From assembly GCA_977020255.1 (NCBI GenBank), contig CDROCS010001101.1:62001-126000 (forward strand): a stretch of DNA of 64,000 nucleotides, read 5' to 3'. The translations under genes and the position numbers were made by a program. The notes beneath the pieces are model-generated. The model was given only the letters and a program-made list of their open reading frames with translations, did no database searches and had not been told where the DNA came from. Positions 6,596 through 62,950 of the stretch are shown in pieces. Source of the DNA: Obrimoposthia wandeli (lineage: Eukaryota). Positions within the stretch are counted from its first letter, which is position 1. Each line of letters starts with the position of its first letter.

Positions 6596-7075
6596 TTATT
6601 CCTCCGGATCTAAAACGAATAAAACATTAACATCTTCTGGTAATGACTTGATGGTGGCGTAAGCTATGCCATTGGGGTTTTCTTCTAACCAATCGAGAAT
6701 GGACGCAATATCATTATCTGATATGGTTGTTGGTAAATTCCCTTTACCTGAAAAGGCTAAACTTGCCCTATATCCATTCATTTGTGATAAAGATTTACCC
6801 AGTAAACCATCGTAAAAATCTGCTTTATCATTATCATCATCGGTCAAATCAACAAGATTGATATTCTCCTTGTTAATTCGTTTTACTTTTCCTTTATATA
6901 TCATTCTGACTTTACTTTTACTGAGCTCAGGAAAGTCGTTATTTAATGAAAAGACGGCAAAACTCCGACCTTCATCTTTGGCTATTTCTTCTTTCGCGTA
7001 GGCAGAAAGTGGTGTTGAGATAGAAATAATGAGTAGTGTGACGCAAAAACTGCGTAAGTTTAATCCTTTAAACAT
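6596..7075 (-). CDS. Small periplasmic protein, phosphate-ABC substrate-binding-like family
   Basis: Signal peptide; LSKSKVRMIYKGK, FSGKG and NPNGIAY motifs; 3 nt from the porin gene. Confidence 0.65.
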   Translation of the reverse strand: MFKGLNLRSFCVTLLIISISTPLSAYAKEEIAKDEGRSFAVFSLNNDFPELSKSKVRMIYKGKVKRINKENINLVDLTDDDNDKADFYDGLLGKSLSQMNGYRASLAFSGKGNLPTTISDNDIASILDWLEENPNGIAYATIKSLPEDVNVLFVLDPEE

Positions 7076-43513: not shown

Positions 43514-45130
43514 ATGTCGAGTTTAGGTTTTAACAATAGCAATGCCATCAATTGGGCTTGGAAAGTAGATCCAGCGTCAGTTCATACACAGGATGTTGGC
43601 ATTAAAGCAGCTTTAATGGATCTGACGAATCCGCTTTACGTGGCTAATAACGCAGGTGTTACAGGTATAACGAATCATACGTCAGTAGCGGGTGCTATTA
43701 GCAATAATGTTGACGTAGATGTACTGGCATTTGCACAAAAGCTAACACCTGAAGATCTGGGTGATGATGCGTATAAGAAACAACATGGGGTTAAATACGC
43801 TTACCATGGCGGCGCTATGGCTAACGGTATTGCGTCGGTTGAACTTGTTGTCGCATTAGGTAAAGCAGGGTTGTTATGTTCGTTCGGTGCGGCAGGTTTA
43901 GTTCCTGACGCGGTTGAAGATGCTATTCGTCGTATTCAAGCTGAATTACCAAATGGCCCTTATGCGGTTAACTTGATCCATGCACCTGCAGAAGAAGCAT
44001 TAGAGCGTGGCGCGGTTGAACGTTTCCTTAAACTGGGTGTTAAGACTGTAGAGGCTTCGGCTTACCTTGGTTTAACTGAGCACATTGTTTGGTATCGTGT
44101 TGCTGGTTTATCTAAAAACAGTGATGGGTCGGTTAATATTGGTAACAAGGTTATCGCTAAAGTATCGCGTACTGAAGTTGGTCGCCGCTTTATGGAACCT
44201 GCACCGCAAAAGTTACTGGATAAGTTATTAGCACAAAACAAGATCACCCCTGAACAAGCTGCATTAGCGCTGCTTGTACCTATGGCTGATGACATTACTG
44301 CGGAAGCTGATTCTGGTGGCCATACTGATAACCGACCATTTTTAACTTTATTACCGACTATCATTGGTCTGCGTGATGAAGTGCAAGCGAAGTATAACTT
44401 CTCTCCTGCATTACGTGTTGGTGCTGGTGGTGGTATCGGAACGCCTGAAGCAGCACTCGCTGCATTTAACATGGGCGCGGCTTATATCGTTCTGGGTTCT
44501 GTGAATCAGGCATGTGTTGAAGCGGGCGCATCTGAATATACCCGTAAGCTGTTATCGACAGTTGAAATGGCCGATGTGACTATGGCACCAGCTGCTGATA
44601 TGTTTGAAATGGGCGTGAAGCTACAAGTATTAAAACGCGGTTCTATGTTCGCTATGCGTGCGAAGAAACTGTATGACTTGTATGTGACTTATGACTCGAT
44701 TGAAGATATCCCAGCTGCAGAACGTGAGAAGATTGAAAAACAAATCTTCCGTTCAAACCTAGACGAGATCTGGGATGGCACTATCGCTTTCTTCACTGAA
44801 CGCGATCCAGAAATGCTAGCCCGTGCAATGAGCAGCCCTAAACGTAAAATGGCACTTATCTTCCGTTGGTATCTTGGTCTTTCTTCACGCTGGTCAAACA
44901 CAGGCGAGAAGGGACGTGAAATGGATTATCAGATTTGGGCTGGCCCAAGTTTAGGCGCATTTAATAGCTGGGTGAAAGGTTCTTACCTTGAAGACTATAC
45001 CCGCCGCGGCGCAGTTGATGTTGCTTTGCATATGCTTAAAGGTGCTGCGTACTTACAACGTGTAAACCAGTTGAAGCTGCAAGGTGTTAGCTTAAGTACA
45101 GAATTGGCAAGTTATCGTACGAGTGATTAA
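43514..45130 (+). CDS. pfaD: PUFA synthase enoyl reductase PfaD
   Basis: GGAMANGI, TAEADSGGHTDNRP and DYQIWAGP motifs; AAGGA RBS. Confidence 0.96.
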   Translation: MSSLGFNNSNAINWAWKVDPASVHTQDVGIKAALMDLTNPLYVANNAGVTGITNHTSVAGAISNNVDVDVLAFAQKLTPEDLGDDAYKKQHGVKYAYHGGAMANGIASVELVVALGKAGLLCSFGAAGLVPDAVEDAIRRIQAELPNGPYAVNLIHAPAEEALERGAVERFLKLGVKTVEASAYLGLTEHIVWYRVAGLSKNSDGSVNIGNKVIAKVSRTEVGRRFMEPAPQKLLDKLLAQNKITPEQAALALLVPMADDITAEADSGGHTDNRPFLTLLPTIIGLRDEVQAKYNFSPALRVGAGGGIGTPEAALAAFNMGAAYIVLGSVNQACVEAGASEYTRKLLSTVEMADVTMAPAADMFEMGVKLQVLKRGSMFAMRAKKLYDLYVTYDSIEDIPAAEREKIEKQIFRSNLDEIWDGTIAFFTERDPEMLARAMSSPKRKMALIFRWYLGLSSRWSNTGEKGREMDYQIWAGPSLGAFNSWVKGSYLEDYTRRGAVDVALHMLKGAAYLQRVNQLKLQGVSLSTELASYRTSD

Positions 45131-45157
45131 TGTTGCTTGATGACATGTGAATTAATT

Positions 45158-45181
45158 AAAGCGCCTGAGGGCGCTTTTTTT
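45158..45181 (+). terminator. pfa operon terminator
   Basis: AAAGCGCC-TGAG-GGCGCTTT followed by a T run. Confidence 0.88.
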
Positions 45182-45622
45182 GATTTTTAATTTCGAATTC
45201 TAAATCAAAATAGTCCAGTTTTGCTTGGTGCATTTACTAAATCCCGATATGCATAATTTTATTATTAAAAAGTGAACCTCTAATCGGCAATACTTATTTT
45301 TAATGAAATAGGCTAAATAGTATAGTTCCATACAGTATCACTACCCTTTCCTTAAGCAGTCTCTAATTGACTGAATACAATCATGTTTATCTTGCCTGTT
45401 AAAATCAATACCAATACAATAAGTTGCATAGCTAGTCTTATTATAACTTACAAGACTAATGAAATAATTTACAGGACGTCTCGATTTGTCAGAAAAAGGC
45501 AACGAGTTAAATCCCAACATCATCTTAACTTTTAACTGTTTAGTAGATATTAGTGATGGTTATTAGGTTTGTCGATCCAAGACGTCCTATTCTAAAAAAT
45601 TAGAATTTTAAGGTTAGTCATT

Positions 45623-46498
45623 ATGAAAAAACCATCTTCTTTTTTCAAATTTGTATCCTATGAAAGAAAAGACATCCTAGAAAATGGACAAATACGATTT
45701 GCCCCAATTGGTGAGTTCAATGACCCTTTTGAGCTAGAGCCTGTGATAACACCTATTTCTAGAGAATATATTGAATTCTCTATTGGATTGTCGGAAAAAG
45801 AACAACAGGAAATAGAGTTCTCTGAGGAAGATAGTAGATACTTATCGGAAAGAGAGTTACAAGTGGATGAGTATGAAAAAATATACAAAGACAAAATCAA
45901 AAAATATGGTGTTTTTAGTTTAAGCTCTAATGCGGACATAAATCCACTTTTGACAGTATGTGTTCCTGAAAAGAAAGATCCAAGGACTAATATTTTAATG
46001 TGGTCACATTATGCCAATTCACACAAGGGCTTTATTATCGAGTTTGATAGTGATTTTATATCTGGTATCGAAATCGAAAAAGTTGAGTATAGCAACTACA
46101 GAGATTTTTTAACTTTCGAAGATATAGATGATTATGACTTTCATAAGGTTTTTTATAAAAAATCGGAAGAGTGGAAGTATGAGCAAGAATACAGAGTAGT
46201 ACTGCCATTGAGTGAGTCATCAGAGGTTAAAAATGACAAATATCACTTGTTTAATTTTAATAAAAAAAGTGTAAAGTCAATTACGTTTGGTTGTGCAATG
46301 GTTGAGTATAATAAGCAAGAGATCATGGACCTGATAGAAAATGATAAGGAATTCGGTTCTGTTTTATTTAATCACGCATTATTAAATGATGATGATTTCT
46401 GCTTACAGTTCTATCACACGACAGGAAAGTGGACCAACCATCCATCACCATTTGGTTTTAAAATGATGAGGAAAATCCCACAGCAAAAAAAAATCTAA
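45623..46498 (+). CDS. DUF2971 domain protein (cassette 1)
   Basis: IRFAPIGEFNDPFE, NILMWSHYANSHKGFIIEFD and KSEEWKYEQEYR motifs; stop codon overlaps the attC R'' box. Confidence 0.85.
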   Translation: MKKPSSFFKFVSYERKDILENGQIRFAPIGEFNDPFELEPVITPISREYIEFSIGLSEKEQQEIEFSEEDSRYLSERELQVDEYEKIYKDKIKKYGVFSLSSNADINPLLTVCVPEKKDPRTNILMWSHYANSHKGFIIEFDSDFISGIEIEKVEYSNYRDFLTFEDIDDYDFHKVFYKKSEEWKYEQEYRVVLPLSESSEVKNDKYHLFNFNKKSVKSITFGCAMVEYNKQEIMDLIENDKEFGSVLFNHALLNDDDFCLQFYHTTGKWTNHPSPFGFKMMRKIPQQKKI

Positions 46499-46595
46499 CA
46501 AGCGCTTGAAATCGGATTCAAAGTTATGCCACATTTTTTGCAAAGGCCTACAAAATAAGCACCATAACTTTTCGTCGCTTAAGCGGGCATTATGT
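46493..46595 (+). mobile_element. attC site (about 103 bp), R' core mutated to ATT
   Basis: R'' ATCTAAC; L'' CGCTT[G]AA pairs with L' TTAAGCG via an extrahelical G; inner IR AAGTTATG/CATAACTT; ends GCGGGC-ATTATGT. Confidence 0.85.
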
Positions 46596-46627
46596 TTTAT
46601 AGATTTTATTAAGGAGTAGTAGTTTCA

Positions 46628-47902
46628 ATGAATGTAATAGATGATTTTCTAGATCAATATAGTAGACAGTACGATTATTATTCTGAGCTTGCCAAAATAG
46701 GTTCTAATTTATTAGAGCTAGAGCTTGAAAAGAGAGGAATTAAGGCAATTGTTTCATTCAGAGCCAAAAGGCCTGAACGTTTAAAGTTAAAATTGGAACA
46801 AAGAAATGAGAAATCTTTATATAAAGTAGTTGAAGATATTTTTGAGGATATCGTTGATTTAGCAGGTGTTCGTGTTGCTTTATATTTCCCCAAGGATAGA
46901 GAATTAGTTGAACAAATAATAAATGATTTATTTAGTGTCAAAAAACGAAAGGTATTTCCAGAAAAAACGCATCAACCTAAGTTTGATAAGCGCTTTTCAG
47001 GGTATTGGGCTTCTCATTACAGAGTTAATATTAAAAATGCATCAAAAAATGAAAAGCGTTATGAAAGTGCTCTGTTTGAAATTCAAGTTGCATCGGTATT
47101 AATGCATGCTTGGTCAGAAGTCGAACATGATCTTGTTTATAAACCTTTTTCAGGTGATCTGTCAGAAGAAGAATATTCTATACTTGATGAAATCAATGGT
47201 CTTGTTTTGACGGGGGAGATTGCTCTTGAAAGGCTTCAAAAAGCTATAACTAAAAGAACTAAAGAGTCAGATGACATTTCAAATAGGTTTGAACTTACAA
47301 GTTTAATTACAAACTCGCTTAACAAAAACTATATAAATAAGCTGAAATTAGGTGATACAAAATTACTTTTCAATTTATTGAAAGACTCAGGTAAAGTTAG
47401 CCCACGTGATATTTCAAACTATTTGAATAAAATTAATCAAAGTGAAAAAGAAACAATTACTGATCAATTATTCACTATGATTCTTAATGATACTTTTTCT
47501 AATTCTAAAAAAGACATAAAGTTAACTAATTATTTTAAACGTTCTTTAGGTAATTTAACTGATGTTTCTGGGTTTGAATCATTTGTTAAAACCTGGATAA
47601 TATTAGAGAAGTCAGTATCAATAATTTACAGTGAAAAGAACAAACATCACAAAAAATTCTTTACTGCTAAGTTCGAACCTTTAGCGTCAGAGGGGTTGAT
47701 AACGAAGGAGGAGGCTATTGAACTTAATCACTTTAAAAGAGTTAGAAACAATTTACTTCACGGGGTCGAAACTCCAAATGACGAAGAGTTGAATGCAGGA
47801 TTCATACGTTTGATAGAATTATCAGAAAAAATAATTTCTGCTATTGAAAATGATGAAGAAAAAGAAAAATTAATGAATGCTATTAAAGTATTGCGAAGTT
47901 AA
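46628..47902 (+). CDS. RelA/SpoT (small alarmone synthetase-type) domain protein with C-terminal HEPN-like domain (cassette 2)
   Basis: SFRAK, DLAGVR, GYWASHY and EIQVASVLMHAWSEVEHDLVYK motifs; C-terminal FVKTWIILE...RVRNNLLHG. Confidence 0.8.
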   Translation: MNVIDDFLDQYSRQYDYYSELAKIGSNLLELELEKRGIKAIVSFRAKRPERLKLKLEQRNEKSLYKVVEDIFEDIVDLAGVRVALYFPKDRELVEQIINDLFSVKKRKVFPEKTHQPKFDKRFSGYWASHYRVNIKNASKNEKRYESALFEIQVASVLMHAWSEVEHDLVYKPFSGDLSEEEYSILDEINGLVLTGEIALERLQKAITKRTKESDDISNRFELTSLITNSLNKNYINKLKLGDTKLLFNLLKDSGKVSPRDISNYLNKINQSEKETITDQLFTMILNDTFSNSKKDIKLTNYFKRSLGNLTDVSGFESFVKTWIILEKSVSIIYSEKNKHHKKFFTAKFEPLASEGLITKEEAIELNHFKRVRNNLLHGVETPNDEELNAGFIRLIELSEKIISAIENDEEKEKLMNAIKVLRS

Positions 47903-47903
47903 A

Positions 47904-47948
47904 ACATAATATCTGCATATTAGAAAACGTGTTATACAGGCGTTAAAA
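47904..47948 (+). mobile_element. Internally deleted attC relic
   Basis: ACATAAT directly after the stop complements ATTATGT at the cassette start; ends AGGC-GTTAAAA; only 45 bp, with no clear L boxes. Confidence 0.55.
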
Positions 47949-47981
47949 GCACAAGTAAATTTACAATAACCTGAGAGTATA

Positions 47982-48779
47982 ATGAGTATAGAATTTTTAG
48001 AGACAGATTTTGAAAAGGTTAGTTATCTAGCAAGTTTAGTGACTGCTCATGCTACAGGGGAAGATGCATCTGATGAGGAATTTGGTCAGCTTCGTCATGA
48101 ATTATTGAGTAATAAGAACCTACAAATATTGCTTCCTAGCTGGTTAAAAGTTCATAGGAATTTGGGATCTTTTTGGGGGTATATTCAGCCCAAATTTGGC
48201 ACTTACTCTGATAGACGTAAATTTATCTCCGAAGAGTTCTCTCCTGCTTTAAGCTTATTAGAGTTCGGGCATACAGTGGAAATGCAAAAAACAGATTTAA
48301 ATGCACCTGTTCAGAGTTCACCCTTTGCACAGACATATACACGACCAAAGAAAAAGATATTCATTGTTCATGGTCGTGATAATGAATCTAAACAAGAATT
48401 GTCTCGTTATATAGAAAGTTTAGGCATTGAAGTTATTATCCTACATGAACAAGCTAGTAGCGGTATGACAATAATTGAAAAGATAGAGCATTATTCAAAT
48501 GAAGTTGATTTTGCATTTGTTCTTTATACCGCATGTGATCACGGACGAGGCATTCATGAAACTAAAGTCCATCCTAAAAATAGAGCTAGGCAAAATGTAG
48601 TCTTTGAGCATGGTTATTTAATGGCTAAATTAGGTCGAAAAAATGTTTGTGCTTTAGTCAAAGGTGAAATTGAGACACCAAACGATATTAGTGGTGTAGT
48701 TTATGTTGGTTTGGACTCCGCAGGATCTTGGAAAATGGAAGTAAATAAAGAACTTAATGCCTGTGGTTACAATATATAA
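47982..48779 (+). CDS. TIR-domain protein (CAP12/Pycsar-type TIR) with helical N-terminal domain (cassette 3)
   Basis: KIFIVHGRD, ILHEQ, TIIEKIE and RARQNVVFEHG (catalytic Glu position) motifs; ETPNDISGVVY. Confidence 0.85.
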   Translation: MSIEFLETDFEKVSYLASLVTAHATGEDASDEEFGQLRHELLSNKNLQILLPSWLKVHRNLGSFWGYIQPKFGTYSDRRKFISEEFSPALSLLEFGHTVEMQKTDLNAPVQSSPFAQTYTRPKKKIFIVHGRDNESKQELSRYIESLGIEVIILHEQASSGMTIIEKIEHYSNEVDFAFVLYTACDHGRGIHETKVHPKNRARQNVVFEHGYLMAKLGRKNVCALVKGEIETPNDISGVVYVGLDSAGSWKMEVNKELNACGYNI

Positions 48780-48795
48780 GTTCTACGTAAAGATA

Positions 48796-48911
48796 GTTTA
48801 ACAAGACGTCAGAAAGGCGTTTAAACAGGACGGAAAAAGTGGGGTAGTTTTCGATCCGCTTCGCTACACATTTTAACCAACAATTAAAAGCCTCTTAATG
48901 GGGCGTTATGC
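48796..48911 (+). mobile_element. attC site (about 116 bp) with apparent small insertion
   Basis: R'' GTTTAAC (complement matches GTTAAAA at 47942 at 6/7), AAGGCGTTTAAACAGG, CGCTTCGCTAC apex, CCTCTTAATGGGGC-GTTATGC end. Confidence 0.8.
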
Positions 48912-48937
48912 ATTAAATCGGGAACGTTTCATCTCAT

Positions 48938-49882
48938 ATGTTAAATAAAATATTTAAAAACCCACTAACTTGGTTTGTTACTTTTACTCTTGGTTTTGGT
49001 GTAGTTATATTTGGGCTGTACTTTAATAACTTCTCTGGTGAATTCAGTACTAGTCAATCAGATTGGGGGAGTTTTGGTTCATATGTTGGAGGTACAGTTG
49101 GGGCTGTATTTGCATCATTATCATTCCTAGCATTGGTGTATACCGTTTACTTACAGAGAAAAGAACTGAAATTAGCGATCGAAGCTCTTAATAAAAGTGC
49201 GGAGGCACATGAACAACAAGTAGAAAACAATAAACTTCAAAAGTTTGAATCTACATTTTATTCTCTATTGGATCTTCATAATAATGCTTTGAAAGACTTG
49301 ATGTCATCAAATTCCAAATACAAAAGTATTCCGAATCGTATTGAAGAGCACTATATATCATCAGAGCCAGAGTTCTTGAAAATAAAGCAGAAGCTAATTT
49401 TAGAAGATGAATTGCTCTCTCAGTACTTTAGGATTCTGTATCAATTACTCAAATTTGTAGCAAAAAACAACGTGAAAAACTCAGATAAACGTTTCGATGC
49501 TGTAATACTTTGTAATAAAGAATCAGTTGAAGAAAATAACAACGAAGAAAAAATGTATGTGAGTATTATTCGAGGTTTTGTACCAGTTAATTTGTTACCT
49601 GCTCTGGCGCTAAACAGTATTCCATCTTACAACTGCATAAATAATCTTGGCTTGTATTGGGAAATGTTAGAAAGGTATGAATTTTTGGAACATATTAAGC
49701 TGGAAAATCTAAATAAAGGGCTATCTGCATTTACAATCCTAAATAACTACGCATTTGCACTTGGTCATAATAATTCTATAGAAAAAAAGTACCATGAATT
49801 GAAGGAAGAAAATTTAAACTTTTGTGACTTAGAGTTAACAGAGGGGTGCTATCTTCATGTTAGATGTGAAGCTGGGATGTGA
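48938..49882 (+). CDS. Putative phage abortive-infection membrane protein, putAbiC-like (cassette 4)
   Basis: Two N-terminal TM helices with DWGSFGSYVGG; QKFESTFYSLL, SQYFRILYQLLKF and LERYEFLEH motifs. Confidence 0.75.
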   Translation: MLNKIFKNPLTWFVTFTLGFGVVIFGLYFNNFSGEFSTSQSDWGSFGSYVGGTVGAVFASLSFLALVYTVYLQRKELKLAIEALNKSAEAHEQQVENNKLQKFESTFYSLLDLHNNALKDLMSSNSKYKSIPNRIEEHYISSEPEFLKIKQKLILEDELLSQYFRILYQLLKFVAKNNVKNSDKRFDAVILCNKESVEENNNEEKMYVSIIRGFVPVNLLPALALNSIPSYNCINNLGLYWEMLERYEFLEHIKLENLNKGLSAFTILNNYAFALGHNNSIEKKYHELKEENLNFCDLELTEGCYLHVRCEAGM

Positions 49883-49884
49883 AT

Positions 49885-49939
49885 GCATAACAAATAAGAA
49901 TAGGTGTCGCGCAGCCGACACCTTATTCGGGTGTTGAAC
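49885..49939 (+). mobile_element. Short intact attC site (55 bp)
   Basis: R'' GCATAAC is the exact complement of GTTATGC at 48905; stem GAATAGGTGTCG / CGACACCTTATTC; R' GTTGAAC. Confidence 0.88.
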
Positions 49940-49994
49940 AAGTCCGAAGCCCTTCTTTATATAGTAAATAACGTGTTTGATCTTGGTGGGCACT

Positions 49995-50020
49995 TCGTCT
50001 TGGGATTAAACCCAAGACGA
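49995..50020. repeat. Perfect 10-bp inverted repeat
   Basis: TCGTCTTGGG-ATTAAA-CCCAAGACGA, with no T tract on either side. Confidence 0.75.
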
Positions 50021-50173
50021 GCGAAATTGAGATAAATAACAGACCTGTTATTTATCAATTAACTAGCTAGTTGTACCATAAATTTAATATCTCCAACTGT
50101 AATGTTAATGCCATTCTTTCTATTATGTTCGCCTTTCGGCCAAGTCGCTTATGTGATGTCCAGGTACTTAATT

Positions 50174-50305
50174 TTATGCGATAAAGTACAACGGATAACC
50201 TAAAGCAACTAAAAACACAATCCAAGAAATGCCTTCGGCAATGACATAGGCGTAAACAACGCCACAAGCGATATCTATAAGTTTTAGCGCACAAAACAGA
50301 ACTAT
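50174..50305 (-). pseudogene. Possible C-terminal fragment of a membrane protein
   Basis: Start-less 43-codon frame IVLFCALKLIDIACGVVYAYVIAEGISWIVFLVALGYPLYFIA*, hydrophobic. Confidence 0.3.
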
Positions 50306-50316
50306 TTAAAGATCTC

Positions 50317-50354
50317 AACAAGGCGATGATTTGATAATGAATTATCGCCTTGTT
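50317..50354. repeat. Perfect 11-bp inverted repeat, possibly attC-derived
   Basis: AACAAGGCGAT...ATCGCCTTGTT, with AAC and GTT termini. Confidence 0.6.
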
Positions 50355-50391
50355 ACTATCAAGAGACTGTAAATGACTGAGATAGAAAGAT

Positions 50392-51141
50392 ATGACACGG
50401 AAGAACATATTGATCACAGGCGCAAGTTCAGGGTTGGGCCGAGGTATGGCCATCGAATTTGCAAAATCAGGTCATAACTTAGCACTTTGTGCACGTAGAC
50501 TTGATAATTTAGTTGCACTGAAAGCAGAACTCTTAGCCCTCAATCCTCACATCCAAATCGAAATCAAACCTCTTGATGTCAACGAACATGAACAAGTCTT
50601 CACTGTTTTCCATGAATTCAAAGCTGAATTTGGTACGCTTGATCGTATTATTGTTAATGCTGGATTAGGCAAGGGCGGATCCGTCGGTACAGGTTTTTTC
50701 AAAGCTAATCTGCAAACAGCACAAACCAATTTTATTGCGGCGCTCGCACAGTGTGAAGCGGCGCTCGAAATTTTTAGGGCGCAAAATGCTGGGCATCTAG
50801 TAACGATTTCTTCTATCAGTGCTGTACGAGGATTCCGCCGTGCGTTAACTGTGTATGCAGCCACTAAAGCAGCACTAACATCATTAACGGAAGGCATCAG
50901 GATTGACGTGATGGATACGCCAATCAAAGTGAGTTGTGTCCATCCTGGATTTATTCGCACCGAGATGAATGAAAAAGTAAAAACAGCACCTTTCATGATA
51001 GATGCTGAAGCGGGTTGTAAAGCGATAGTGAAAGCAATTAATAAAGAAAAAGCGAATAGTTATGTACCAAGTTACCCTTGGGCTATTATGCATTTATTAC
51101 TACGTGTGGCTCCTACAAGTCTGATTCGAAAAATGAGTTAA
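50392..51141 (+). CDS. Short-chain dehydrogenase/reductase
   Basis: ITGASSGLG, NAG and YAATK motifs. Confidence 0.9.
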   Translation: MTRKNILITGASSGLGRGMAIEFAKSGHNLALCARRLDNLVALKAELLALNPHIQIEIKPLDVNEHEQVFTVFHEFKAEFGTLDRIIVNAGLGKGGSVGTGFFKANLQTAQTNFIAALAQCEAALEIFRAQNAGHLVTISSISAVRGFRRALTVYAATKAALTSLTEGIRIDVMDTPIKVSCVHPGFIRTEMNEKVKTAPFMIDAEAGCKAIVKAINKEKANSYVPSYPWAIMHLLLRVAPTSLIRKMS

Positions 51142-61696: not shown

Positions 61697-62950
61697 ATGA
61701 AAATGAATAAGTTAAGAAGGGAAATCATTAAAGCTGGTGGCTATGTCGCTTTAGCTGCTGCACCATTAACGGCTTTCTCTAAAGAGTTTATGAAAGACGG
61801 CAAGATGTATTCAGATGGTGAAGGGGTGAGCTATGCAGATGGCCCTAAGCCTGTATTAAGCAATTTTCCGCAAAAAGATAATGTTGTGATCGTACATACT
61901 CGACCACCTCATCTTGAAACGCCTTTTAATGTATTTAATGAAGGACTAATAACACCAAACAACCGTTTCTTTGTTCGTTATCACTTAGCTGACGTCCCTG
62001 TTGCCATAGACACTGATAAATACACTATTACTATTTCAGGGGCTGTTGATAAGGAAGTCACATTAAGTTTGGCTGAATTAAAGTCAATTGAAGGCCAACA
62101 AGAAATTGTAGCTGTACAACAGTGTACTGGTAATAGCCGAGGTTATTCATCACCACGTGTTTTTGGTGCGCAATTAAGTAATGGCGCTATGGGTAATGCG
62201 AAGTTCAAAGGTGTGCCACTTAAAAACGTGTTAGCGAAAGCGGGTATTTCTAGTGCAGCGACAAGTGTCATCATTGATGGTTTAGATAAGCCAGTTAGAG
62301 AGACGACTCCAGACTTTCAAAAATCATTACCTATTGATCATATTATGACAGGCGAACCTATGCTTGTTTGGGAAATGAATGGTGAACCTTTACCATTTTT
62401 AAATGGCTTTCCAGTGAAATTAATCGTTCCGGGTTGGTATGCAACATATTGGGTTAAGCATGTATCGCACCTTAAAGTCATAGAGGACAAGTTTGATAAC
62501 TTTGATGCGTTCTTTATGACAACTGCATACCGTCTACCTGATAATGATTCTAAGAGTGAATTACCAACTGCCAGAGCGAAAAAGACGTTACCTGTAAATC
62601 GATTCCCAATAAGAAGTTTTGTTACTAGTTTAGAAAATGGTGATGAAGTTAACGCTGCAACCAGTATTGAAATTAAAGGGATAGCTTTTGATAGTGGTAG
62701 TGGTATCAAAAAAGTTGAAGTTTCAATCGATGGTGGGAATAAGTGGATGCAAGCAGCGCTTGGTGAAAATCTTGGTCGCTTTTCCTTTCGAGGTTGGAAG
62801 TTAAGTCATAGCTTCAATGAAAAAGGCAGAACGCTTGTGATGGTAAGAGCAACAGGTAAGAGTGGTGAGACACAACCTGTTAATGCATCTTGGAATCATG
62901 GTGGTTATAACCGAAACGCGATTGAACGAACAAGTATTAAGGTGGTTTAA
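61697..62950 (+). CDS. Tat-exported molybdopterin sulfite dehydrogenase, SorA-like
   Basis: LRREIIK twin-Arg signal; FFVRYHL, QCTGNSR (Mo-ligating Cys), GAMGNA and AYRLPD motifs. Confidence 0.88.
   Translation: MKMNKLRREIIKAGGYVALAAAPLTAFSKEFMKDGKMYSDGEGVSYADGPKPVLSNFPQKDNVVIVHTRPPHLETPFNVFNEGLITPNNRFFVRYHLADVPVAIDTDKYTITISGAVDKEVTLSLAELKSIEGQQEIVAVQQCTGNSRGYSSPRVFGAQLSNGAMGNAKFKGVPLKNVLAKAGISSAATSVIIDGLDKPVRETTPDFQKSLPIDHIMTGEPMLVWEMNGEPLPFLNGFPVKLIVPGWYATYWVKHVSHLKVIEDKFDNFDAFFMTTAYRLPDNDSKSELPTARAKKTLPVNRFPIRSFVTSLENGDEVNAATSIEIKGIAFDSGSGIKKVEVSIDGGNKWMQAALGENLGRFSFRGWKLSHSFNEKGRTLVMVRATGKSGETQPVNASWNHGGYNRNAIERTSIKVV

Follow-up and report, generated by a model that had tools for sequence, protein, structure and literature searches.

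One gene in the 64,000-nucleotide stretch of contig CDROCS010001101.1 that we analyzed (positions 62,001 to 126,000 of the contig, from an Obrimoposthia wandeli assembly; the whole stretch is called the window below) encodes a small alarmone synthetase joined to a HEPN domain in a single polypeptide of 424 amino acids (aa), accompanied by neither a hydrolase nor a partner gene. Pfam, structure searches, and a survey of homologous loci confirmed this fusion, which the initial annotation of the window had proposed. The synthetase-HEPN fusion is real, is widespread, and has apparently not been studied before.

The reading that we tentatively favor is a CapRel-like fused toxin and sensor encoded by a single gene: the variable C-terminal half would restrain the synthetase until a phage cue arrives, and the HEPN domain would add a second, RNase activity. 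This reading is based on the presence of two enzyme folds whose catalytic motifs are intact, on a compact AlphaFold (AF2) model of the protein, and on an asymmetry of evolutionary rates like that in CapRel. Furthermore, it is supported by the exclusive pairing of the two modules, the lack of a conserved neighbor gene, the patchy spread, the defense-type neighbors, and the mobile sister fusions.

Domain architecture and active-site motifs

The open reading frame (ORF) and the motifs RAKRPER, DLAG, EIQVAS, FVKTWIILE, and RNNLLH quoted in the initial annotation were all found at the codons named there. Pfam assigned residues 45-172 to RelA_SpoT (PF04607; 53.9 bits against a cut-off of 27; E value, 2.5e-14), while the NCBIfam YjbM model gave 35.6 bits against its 320-bit cut-off. 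An HD domain was not matched in the Pfam scan of the 424-aa protein, as expected from the earlier statement that a hydrolase domain is missing. The full-length AF2 model was compact and two-domain (predicted local distance difference test score [pLDDT], 83.9; predicted template modeling score, 0.80), and its sole uncertain part was the loop 113-126, which is predicted to be flexible. In VIA-align searches, residues 1-210 matched complete small alarmone synthetases: RelQ (5dec) was found with a Z of 17.1 (182 residues aligned; root mean square deviation, 3.0), RelP (6ewz) with a Z of 16.6, and Bacillus subtilis SAS2 with a Z of 16.2.

The ATP/Mg residues and the substrate-loop Tyr (R45, K47, D77, G80, R82, Y126, H130, E151, Q153, H167, Y171, and K172) were invariant or at least 95% conserved. 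The motifs Syn1 (R-x-K), Syn2 (D-x-x-G-x-R), Syn3 (G-Y-x-x-x-H; G125/Y126/H130), and Syn5 (H-x-x-x-Y-K; H167/Y171/K172) were all present. Only the full Syn4 motif, E-x-Q-I-R-T, was not matched, since Arg-Thr is replaced by Ala-Ser (EIQVAS) family-wide. Each of the 80 homologous loci surveyed had the D-x-x-G-x-R and E-x-Q patterns; 69 of them had exactly EIQVAS, and the others, bar three, ended in Ala-Ser too. Moreover, A155 and S156 were at least 95% conserved among 76 homologs, showing that the motif deviations pointed out in the initial annotation are not only present but are fixed traits of the clade. A sister protein from Rhizobium has EIQVCS, and more distant sisters have the canonical Arg-Thr (EIQIRT in a Klebsiella plasmid protein and EIQVRT in a Vibrio phage protein). 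Active synthetases with Syn4 deviations have been reported (PMC5566576).

Y126 presumably corresponds to the G-loop Tyr required by CapRel (PMC9712102). Judged by its motifs, the N-terminal half is expected to be a RelQ/RelP-type pyrophosphokinase, which would take pyrophosphate from ATP and attach it to a 3'-OH, either that of a purine nucleotide or that at the 3' end of an RNA. Helix 182-203 (window 47171-47236; consensus, L-D-E-I-N-G-L-V-L-x-G-E-I-A-L-E-R-L) is near-invariant across phyla and exceeds much of the catalytic core in this respect, which suggests that it may be a hinge or an interface toward the C-terminal half.

The C-terminal half was all-helical in the models. No Pfam or structural match covered the connector (residues 216-307), and with the single sequence, Pfam detected HepT-like only below threshold (17.1 bits against a cut-off of 23.5). 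For family-level searches, 49 members from loci of many phyla were aligned over residues 212-424. The profile of this alignment matched the HEPN toxin 7ae9 (E value, 9.7e-4), with the family motif R-N-x-L-V-H aligned onto the HepT catalytic motif. When the 49 members were scanned singly against the HEPN-clan Pfam families, DUF4145 was matched by 17, HepT-like by 14, RiboL-PSP-HEPN by 8, Swt1 and Cthe_2314 by 4 each, and Csm6 by 1. The best E values of the DUF4145, HepT-like, and RiboL-PSP-HEPN matches were 2.6e-4 to 5e-4, and the window protein itself was under the cut-off for DUF4145 and HepT-like.

A separate model of residues 212-424 reached a pLDDT of 87.1. Foldseek found nothing in the PDB with this model (best E value, 0.67), and an ESM Atlas search with residues 214-424 gave no usable match. 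In VIA-align searches with residues 308-424, HEPN domains took 8 of the top 11 ranks (Z, 7.3 to 9.1), a result reproduced with the full-length model. The matches were 1wwp (Z, 9.1 to 9.2), Swt1 4pqz (7.8 to 8.3), 2hsb (7.8 to 8.5), the HepT structures 7ae2, 8xdj, and 5yep (7.5 to 8.0), 1jog (HI0074; 7.6), 1ylm (7.5), and AbiA's C-terminal domain (7.3). For helical bundles, Z values of this size are modest, and the weight lies on the enrichment of HEPN matches and on the motif alignment. Together, the family profile match to 7ae9, the HEPN-clan matches of single members, and the top structure-search ranks confirm, at the level of predicted structure, that residues 308-424 adopt the HEPN fold. 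The HEPN-like C terminus of the initial annotation thus held up, as did the fusion as such, but the boundaries had to be amended: the HEPN domain comprises residues 308-424, and the helical connector of ~90 aa (residues 216-307) had not been described.

The R-x4-H motif, with the polar N374 following the Arg as in the R-x4-6-H pattern of the HEPN superfamily, was retained in 75 of 77 assessable homologs. Two Paludibacter copies from metagenome-assembled genomes (MAGs; L028 and L033) have lost the HEPN His and kept every synthetase motif. The C-terminal HEPN domain with its R-x4-H site is expected to be a metal-independent endoribonuclease, a prediction made from the motif.

Family distribution and gene neighborhoods

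A word-index search yielded 2646 relatives. The best 120 of them were nearly all 417 to 435 aa long and covered at full length, and their hosts included Colwellia, Serratia, Pectobacterium, Vibrio, Aeromonas, Rufibacter, and a Calditrichaceae bacterium. In contigs representing one genome per species, a relative was found in 469 of ~185,000 species genomes (~0.25% of species). These belong to at least nine phyla, among them Pseudomonadota, Desulfobacterota, Bacteroidota, Bacillota, Actinomycetota, Cyanobacteriota, Acidobacteriota, Chloroflexota, Spirochaetota, and Latescibacterota. Cross-phylum pairs can be 92 to 95% identical, as between Dyadobacter and a cyanobacterial MAG or between Clostridium and a Prevotella bin. 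Identities of 83 to 95% across assigned phyla were also seen within the locus groups L007, L008, and L009 (an Actinomycetes MAG, a cyanobacterial MAG, and Dyadobacter) and L060, L064, and L066 (Clostridium with a Prevotella bin). The near-identical copies point to very recent transfer between phyla, the alternative being mis-binned MAG contigs.

Conservation differs strongly along the protein. In residues 1-215, the mean pairwise identity was 58% and 66 of 215 columns were at least 95% conserved. In the connector, the mean pairwise identity was 29% with only L223, G242, and Q280 conserved, and in the HEPN domain it was 25% with only W323, E327, R373, and H378 fixed. A profile of the C-terminal half gave 1305 matches at an E value of ≤0.001 among 1.8 billion protein representatives, including 172 clusters below 1e-30. 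Most of the best 150 matches begin near residue 215 of a protein of ~420 aa. Ten proteins of atypical length among these 150 were scanned, and all had an N-terminal RelA_SpoT match, indicating that, among the scanned matches, the C-terminal module always stands behind a synthetase, with no sign of a shuffled sensor domain. Four proteins of 305 to 414 aa and the 355-aa protein P0152 begin inside the synthetase domain and are N-truncated fragments, while five proteins of 535 to 580 aa (P0134, P0136, P0141, P0164, and P0217) have a full synthetase and an extra 100 to 130 residues after the HEPN domain. Fragment P0152 ends with a LuxR/GerE helix-turn-helix.

In databases, the protein is named only "GTP pyrophosphokinase" or "RelA/SpoT domain protein." A description of a RelA/SpoT-HEPN fusion was not found in the open-access literature searched, which included work on integron cassettes. 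What the searches returned were toxic small alarmone synthetase systems, CapRel, HepT/MntA, and FhepTA, a fusion of a minimal nucleotidyltransferase (MNT) with HEPN.

The nearest relatives of the N-terminal domain that carry other C termini sit on mobile elements, as seen in three examples. A 378-aa sister is the sole large nonreplication gene of the 3.5-kb ColE1-type Klebsiella plasmid NZ_CP058965.1 (L082 436-1572), which otherwise has small replication and regulatory genes only. A 336-aa sister is a cargo gene of the Vibrio filamentous phage PQ189320.1 (L083 6571-7581), and a 361-aa sister is located on a Rhizobium conjugative plasmid. Relatedness of the Klebsiella and Rhizobium C termini to the connector-HEPN half was considered and rejected (hhalign probability, <1%). 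The Klebsiella plasmid and Vibrio phage sisters match the PADLOC candidate PDC-S33 at E values of 1e-15 to 1e-17, better than the window protein does. In CapRel, a conserved toxin domain is combined with a variable sensor (PMC9712102); the combination of one conserved synthetase with exchangeable C-terminal halves follows this theme.

No neighbor gene was conserved across the 80 homologous loci beyond closely related genomes, suggesting that the gene works alone and bearing out the earlier remark that an obvious antitoxin gene is missing. The genes closely 3' of the homologs are mutually unrelated: they encode an HD_3 hydrolase, a methyltransferase, a beta-lactamase, a nuclease-like protein, isopropylmalate dehydrogenase, and a Ymh-type HEPN protein. 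A hidden small antitoxin ORF is unlikely, because the flanking gaps, which measure merely 2 to 140 bp in many loci, are often too short for it. Among 60 immediate neighbors, defense-type genes were clearly above chance, namely, ThsB, SIR2, DUF4145 (three), PD-Lambda-3_B, McrB-N, restriction enzymes, a NucC-like effector, PDC-S54, and PDC-S66. In Photobacterium lipolyticum, and in this genome only, an HD_3/YfbR-like phosphohydrolase gene (L004 8301-8948) starts 19 nucleotides (nt) after the homolog; the enzyme could in principle degrade a nucleotide product.

Island and attC-like elements in the window

The gene lies in a stretch of ~31% GC that begins directly after the strong terminator of a pfaD-like gene (45158-45177), while the pfa genes upstream of it have ~43% GC. 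The coordinates of the gene, its motifs, and its surroundings are listed in Table 1. The DUF2971, synthetase-HEPN, TIR, and AbiC-like genes are on the same strand and form a four-gene, low-GC, defense-type island after the terminator. For the N-terminal 120 aa of the TIR protein no match was found. The TIR gene was considered as a signaling or conserved partner of the fusion gene and rejected: it stands beside none of the 80 homologs, and relatives of it occur in only 2 of the 80 loci, ~4 kb away and on the opposite strand.

Table 1. Features of the synthetase-HEPN gene and of its surroundings in the window
Feature	Position	Strand	Residues and details	Basis
Coding sequence, RelQ/RelP-like synthetase, helical connector, and HEPN domain	46628..47902	+	424 aa	ORF read, Pfam, AF2 model, VIA-align
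Ribosome-binding site	46611..46616	+	AAGGAG, 11 nt 5' of ATG	Sequence read
Small alarmone synthetase domain	46628..47272	+	Residues 1-215: N-terminal helix, catalytic core 36-175, highly conserved C-terminal helix 180-213	PF04607, VIA-align
Syn1-type motif	46760..46780	+	RAKRPER, residues 45-51; R45 and K47 conserved, Arg (R51) at canonical Ser position	
Syn2 motif	46856..46873	+	DLAGVR (DLAG, residues 77-80) with D77, G80, R82	
Substrate-loop motif	46988..47017	+	KRFSGYWASH; K121, R122, G125, Y126, H130 conserved	
Syn4 motif	47078..47095	+	EIQVAS, residues 151-156; E151 and Q153 retained, Ala-Ser in place of canonical Arg-Thr	
Helical connector domain	47273..47548	+	Residues 216-307, ~90 aa	Model, family alignment
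HEPN domain	47549..47899	+	Residues 308-424	VIA-align, family profile
First HEPN helix	47573..47608	+	Conserved F316, E317, W323, E327 (FVKTWIILE, residues 319-327)	
R-x4-H motif, putative RNase active site	47744..47761	+	RNNLLH, residues 373-378 (R373, N374, H378)	
DUF2971 protein	45623..46498	+	PADLOC PDC-S31	Pfam, PADLOC; context
CAP12/Pycsar-type TIR protein	47982..48779	+	PADLOC PDC-S35 (E value, 3e-75); 79 nt 3' of the fusion gene	Context
Membrane protein with AbiC-like domain	48938..49882	+		Context
Upstream attC-like element	46493..46593	+	5' box ATCTAAC fits RYYYAAC; 3' box ends GGGCATTAT; degenerate R' ATTATGT	Spacer reading
Second attC-like element	48796..48911	+	5' GTTTAAC; 3' end GGGGCGTTATGC (box GTTATGC)	Spacer reading

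Two attC-like elements, the only two in the window, bracket a unit of two genes, synthetase-HEPN and TIR. Each measures 100 to 115 nt, opening with an RYYYAAC box and closing with a box that ends in GGGC[A/G]TTAT; attC sites are defined by R'' (RYYYAAC) and R' (GTTRRRY) boxes together with a folded bottom strand. Bottom-strand folding was better than that of shuffled sequences only for the upstream element (z, -2.4), the 79-nt spacer between the two genes had no attC-like structure, and a repeat finder detected no attC repeat family. Directly before the Colwellia and Shewanella homologs (L001 ~6868-6966; L003 ~6790-6880), the upstream element is conserved, and the gene therefore seems to move as a cassette in gammaproteobacteria of marine origin. 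Integron cassettes are indeed described as carriers of phage-defense genes (bioRxiv 10.1101/2024.07.02.601719).

An Rfam scan of 45100-50450 revealed no RNA family; three weak, far-subthreshold small RNA matches, two of them at the pfaD terminator, were taken as chance. Promoter and terminator scans within the island were at chance level. The assembly (1.35 Gb, 6912 contigs) contains 28 RelA_SpoT matches and is therefore no single bacterial genome but a mixture, either of many organisms or of a host and its microbes.

Possible functions and relation to known systems

Among the main types of effectors in bacterial immunity and in toxin-antitoxin systems are toxic alarmone synthetases and HEPN RNases. 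In the CapRel-like mechanism that we favor, the fast-evolving connector and HEPN domain would be packed on the synthetase in the resting state, with the activities held off. A phage-derived cue would engage the variable half and release the enzyme, perhaps with HEPN dimerization. RNA damage and pyrophosphorylation of tRNA or nucleotides would then shut down translation and abort the infection. More broadly, we read the gene, with considerable uncertainty, as a stand-alone and horizontally mobile conflict module on one polypeptide. The analysis shows its domain identities, the conservation of its active-site residues, its autonomy and mobility, its defense-type setting, and its uneven evolutionary rates, while toxicity, autoinhibition, the trigger, and the substrates are inferred. 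The proposal of a self-contained toxin made in the initial annotation agrees with this in part: context and evolutionary pattern fit a self-contained conflict or defense module, but the version in which the HEPN domain is regulated by nucleotidylation is disfavored (see below). The dual-effector version is possible.

Several results weigh against this CapRel-like reading. By VIA-align, the N-terminal domain is nearer to the housekeeping enzymes RelQ and RelP (Z, ~17) than to the toxic CapRel (7ztb; Z, 11.3), Tas1 (10.0), or FaRel (7.4), and Foldseek agrees. The replacement of Arg-Thr by Ala-Ser in Syn4 might change or weaken catalysis. The homodimer prediction with two C-terminal halves scored 0.00, a value that speaks neither for nor against binding. 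Finally, many neighbors in other genomes are ordinary metabolic genes.

The two enzymes could also act as one circuit, a possibility that we rate as unlikely. Either self-made (p)ppGpp or (p)ppApp would gate the HEPN domain, or the HEPN domain would capture or cut an RNA such as tRNA and the synthetase would pyrophosphorylate its 3' end. Such a circuit is compatible with the exclusive and ancient pairing of the module with the synthetase and with the two conserved active sites. If true, the alarmone-gated version would amount to an immune switch that works by a second messenger and is complete in one polypeptide, and the cut-and-pyrophosphorylate version would create a double lesion beyond the phage tRNA-repair enzymes.

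Among the rival explanations, a nontoxic, dual-domain regulatory synthetase was given a rather low probability but is to be taken seriously because of the RelQ/RelP-like fold and the known fusion of RNase HII to a synthetase. Such an enzyme would make (p)ppGpp or (p)ppApp, and its HEPN domain would bind or trim RNA, thereby coupling alarmone output to RNA status. RelQ is RNA sensitive and so provides a precedent. The N-terminal domain is nearest to RelQ and RelP over its whole length (Z, 16 to 17), all synthetase motifs are present except for part of Syn4, and many neighbors are housekeeping genes. PMC5566576 further offers active enzymes with Syn4 deviations and, with MS_RHII-RSD, a precedent for the fusion of an RNase and a synthetase. 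A regulator of this kind is, however, hard to reconcile with a family that occurs in only ~0.25% of species, has near-identical copies across phyla, and is found in cassette and defense-island settings, and a fast-evolving C-terminal half would be unusual for a housekeeping regulator.

The remaining two explanations attribute other roles to the HEPN domain. It could be the toxin of a fused, type VII-like toxin-antitoxin, kept off by covalent modification from the synthetase with its nucleotidyltransferase (NTase) fold, as MntA acts on HepT and FhepTA on itself. The combination of a Pol-beta-fold NTase with an R-x4-H HEPN domain repeats the MntA/HepT logic, HepT structures rank high among the structural matches, and a fused MNT-HEPN system is proven (PMC13000451; PMC7641770). 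We nevertheless consider this explanation improbable. HepT is modified on a Tyr at the second position after the His; in this family, Ile or Val stands there (H-G-[IV]-E), and residues 212-424 contain no conserved Tyr, Ser, or Thr among the 49 diverse members. The N-terminal domain is RelA_SpoT, not a minimal NTase, and had no MNT-type Pfam match. In addition, conservation is far higher in the synthetase than in the domain that it would modify, and the synthetase is intact in the two Paludibacter copies without the HEPN His. RelA/SpoT enzymes are known solely to pyrophosphorylate the ribose 3'-OH, and none is known to modify a protein. Thus, the residue at the HepT Tyr position, the lack of conserved acceptor residues, the known reaction of RelA/SpoT enzymes, and the intact synthetase motifs where the HEPN His is lost speak against regulation by nucleotidylation, the other option raised in the initial annotation. 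Of all explanations, we hold least probable that the HEPN-like domain lacks RNase activity and is the substrate-binding lobe of a nucleotidyl or pyrophosphoryl transferase in the style of KNTase or GlnE. Several Pol-beta NTases use helical domains derived from HEPN as lobes for substrate binding (PMC3710099), and HI0074 (1jog) was among the structural matches. The substrate-binding HEPN families, however, are without R-x4-H (Table 1 of PMC3710099), while R373, N374, and H378 belong to the handful of positions that are fixed in this fast-evolving domain. Moreover, none of the solved NTases matched the model over its two domains together.

Alarmone synthetases and HEPN RNases have so far been studied separately, and this family joins both permanently, with conserved active sites and no partner gene. 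If the defense function is true, two ways of stopping translation would be packed into one compact gene system, and the family would add a new example of a fused sensor-effector, with a variable half that could be mined for phage triggers. A regulatory function would mean a direct link between alarmone synthesis and RNA cleavage. The key residues (D77, E151, Y126, R373, and H378) are now identified, and a set of close homologs is at hand.

When compared with known systems, the window protein shares with PADLOC candidate PDC-S33 a weak match in the RelA/SpoT-type N-terminal region (E value, 1.8e-8); only 125 of the 349 model positions are matched and the C terminus is unrelated. Closer in composition is MS_RHII-RSD, the actRel dual-domain synthetase of Mycobacterium smegmatis that is cited in PMC5566576, since it combines a small alarmone synthetase and a ribonuclease in one protein. 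It differs by its RNase HII, which acts on RNA-DNA hybrids, by its other synthetase subgroup, and by its description as a stress-response enzyme and not as a mobile defense gene. RelQ and RelP (5dec and 6ewz) share with residues 1-210 the whole fold, including both flanking helices, and the Syn1, Syn2, Syn3, and Syn5 motifs. In contrast to them, the window protein has EIQVAS instead of E-x-Q-I-R-T, Arg instead of Ser in Syn1, and ~210 extra C-terminal residues, and a patchy, mobile distribution belongs to its family.

HepT/MntA and FhepTA (PMC7641770, PMC13000451) likewise combine a Pol-beta-fold transferase with a HEPN RNase containing R-N-x-x-x-H, and FhepTA is also a single polypeptide on mobile elements. 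Their transferase is a minimal NTase, whereas here it is a 215-aa RelA/SpoT synthetase; in place of the linker of 3 to 5 residues there is a connector domain of ~90 aa, and the AMPylated Tyr is absent here. CapRel-SJ46 (PMC9712102) resembles the window protein in being encoded by a single gene without a separate antitoxin, in its N-terminal RelA/SpoT synthetase, where the G-loop Tyr and the Arg residues that bind ATP are conserved, in having the C-terminal half as its least conserved part, and in its mobile, defense-type context. Its N-terminal domain is more distant (Z, 11.3) than those of RelQ and RelP (Z, 17), and its C-terminal half has a pseudo-zinc-finger with a YXXY hinge, a feature absent from the helical models of the window protein, which has a helical connector and an R-x4-H HEPN domain in this place. 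Membership in the CapRel class would imply defense and phage-triggered tRNA pyrophosphorylation for the window protein.

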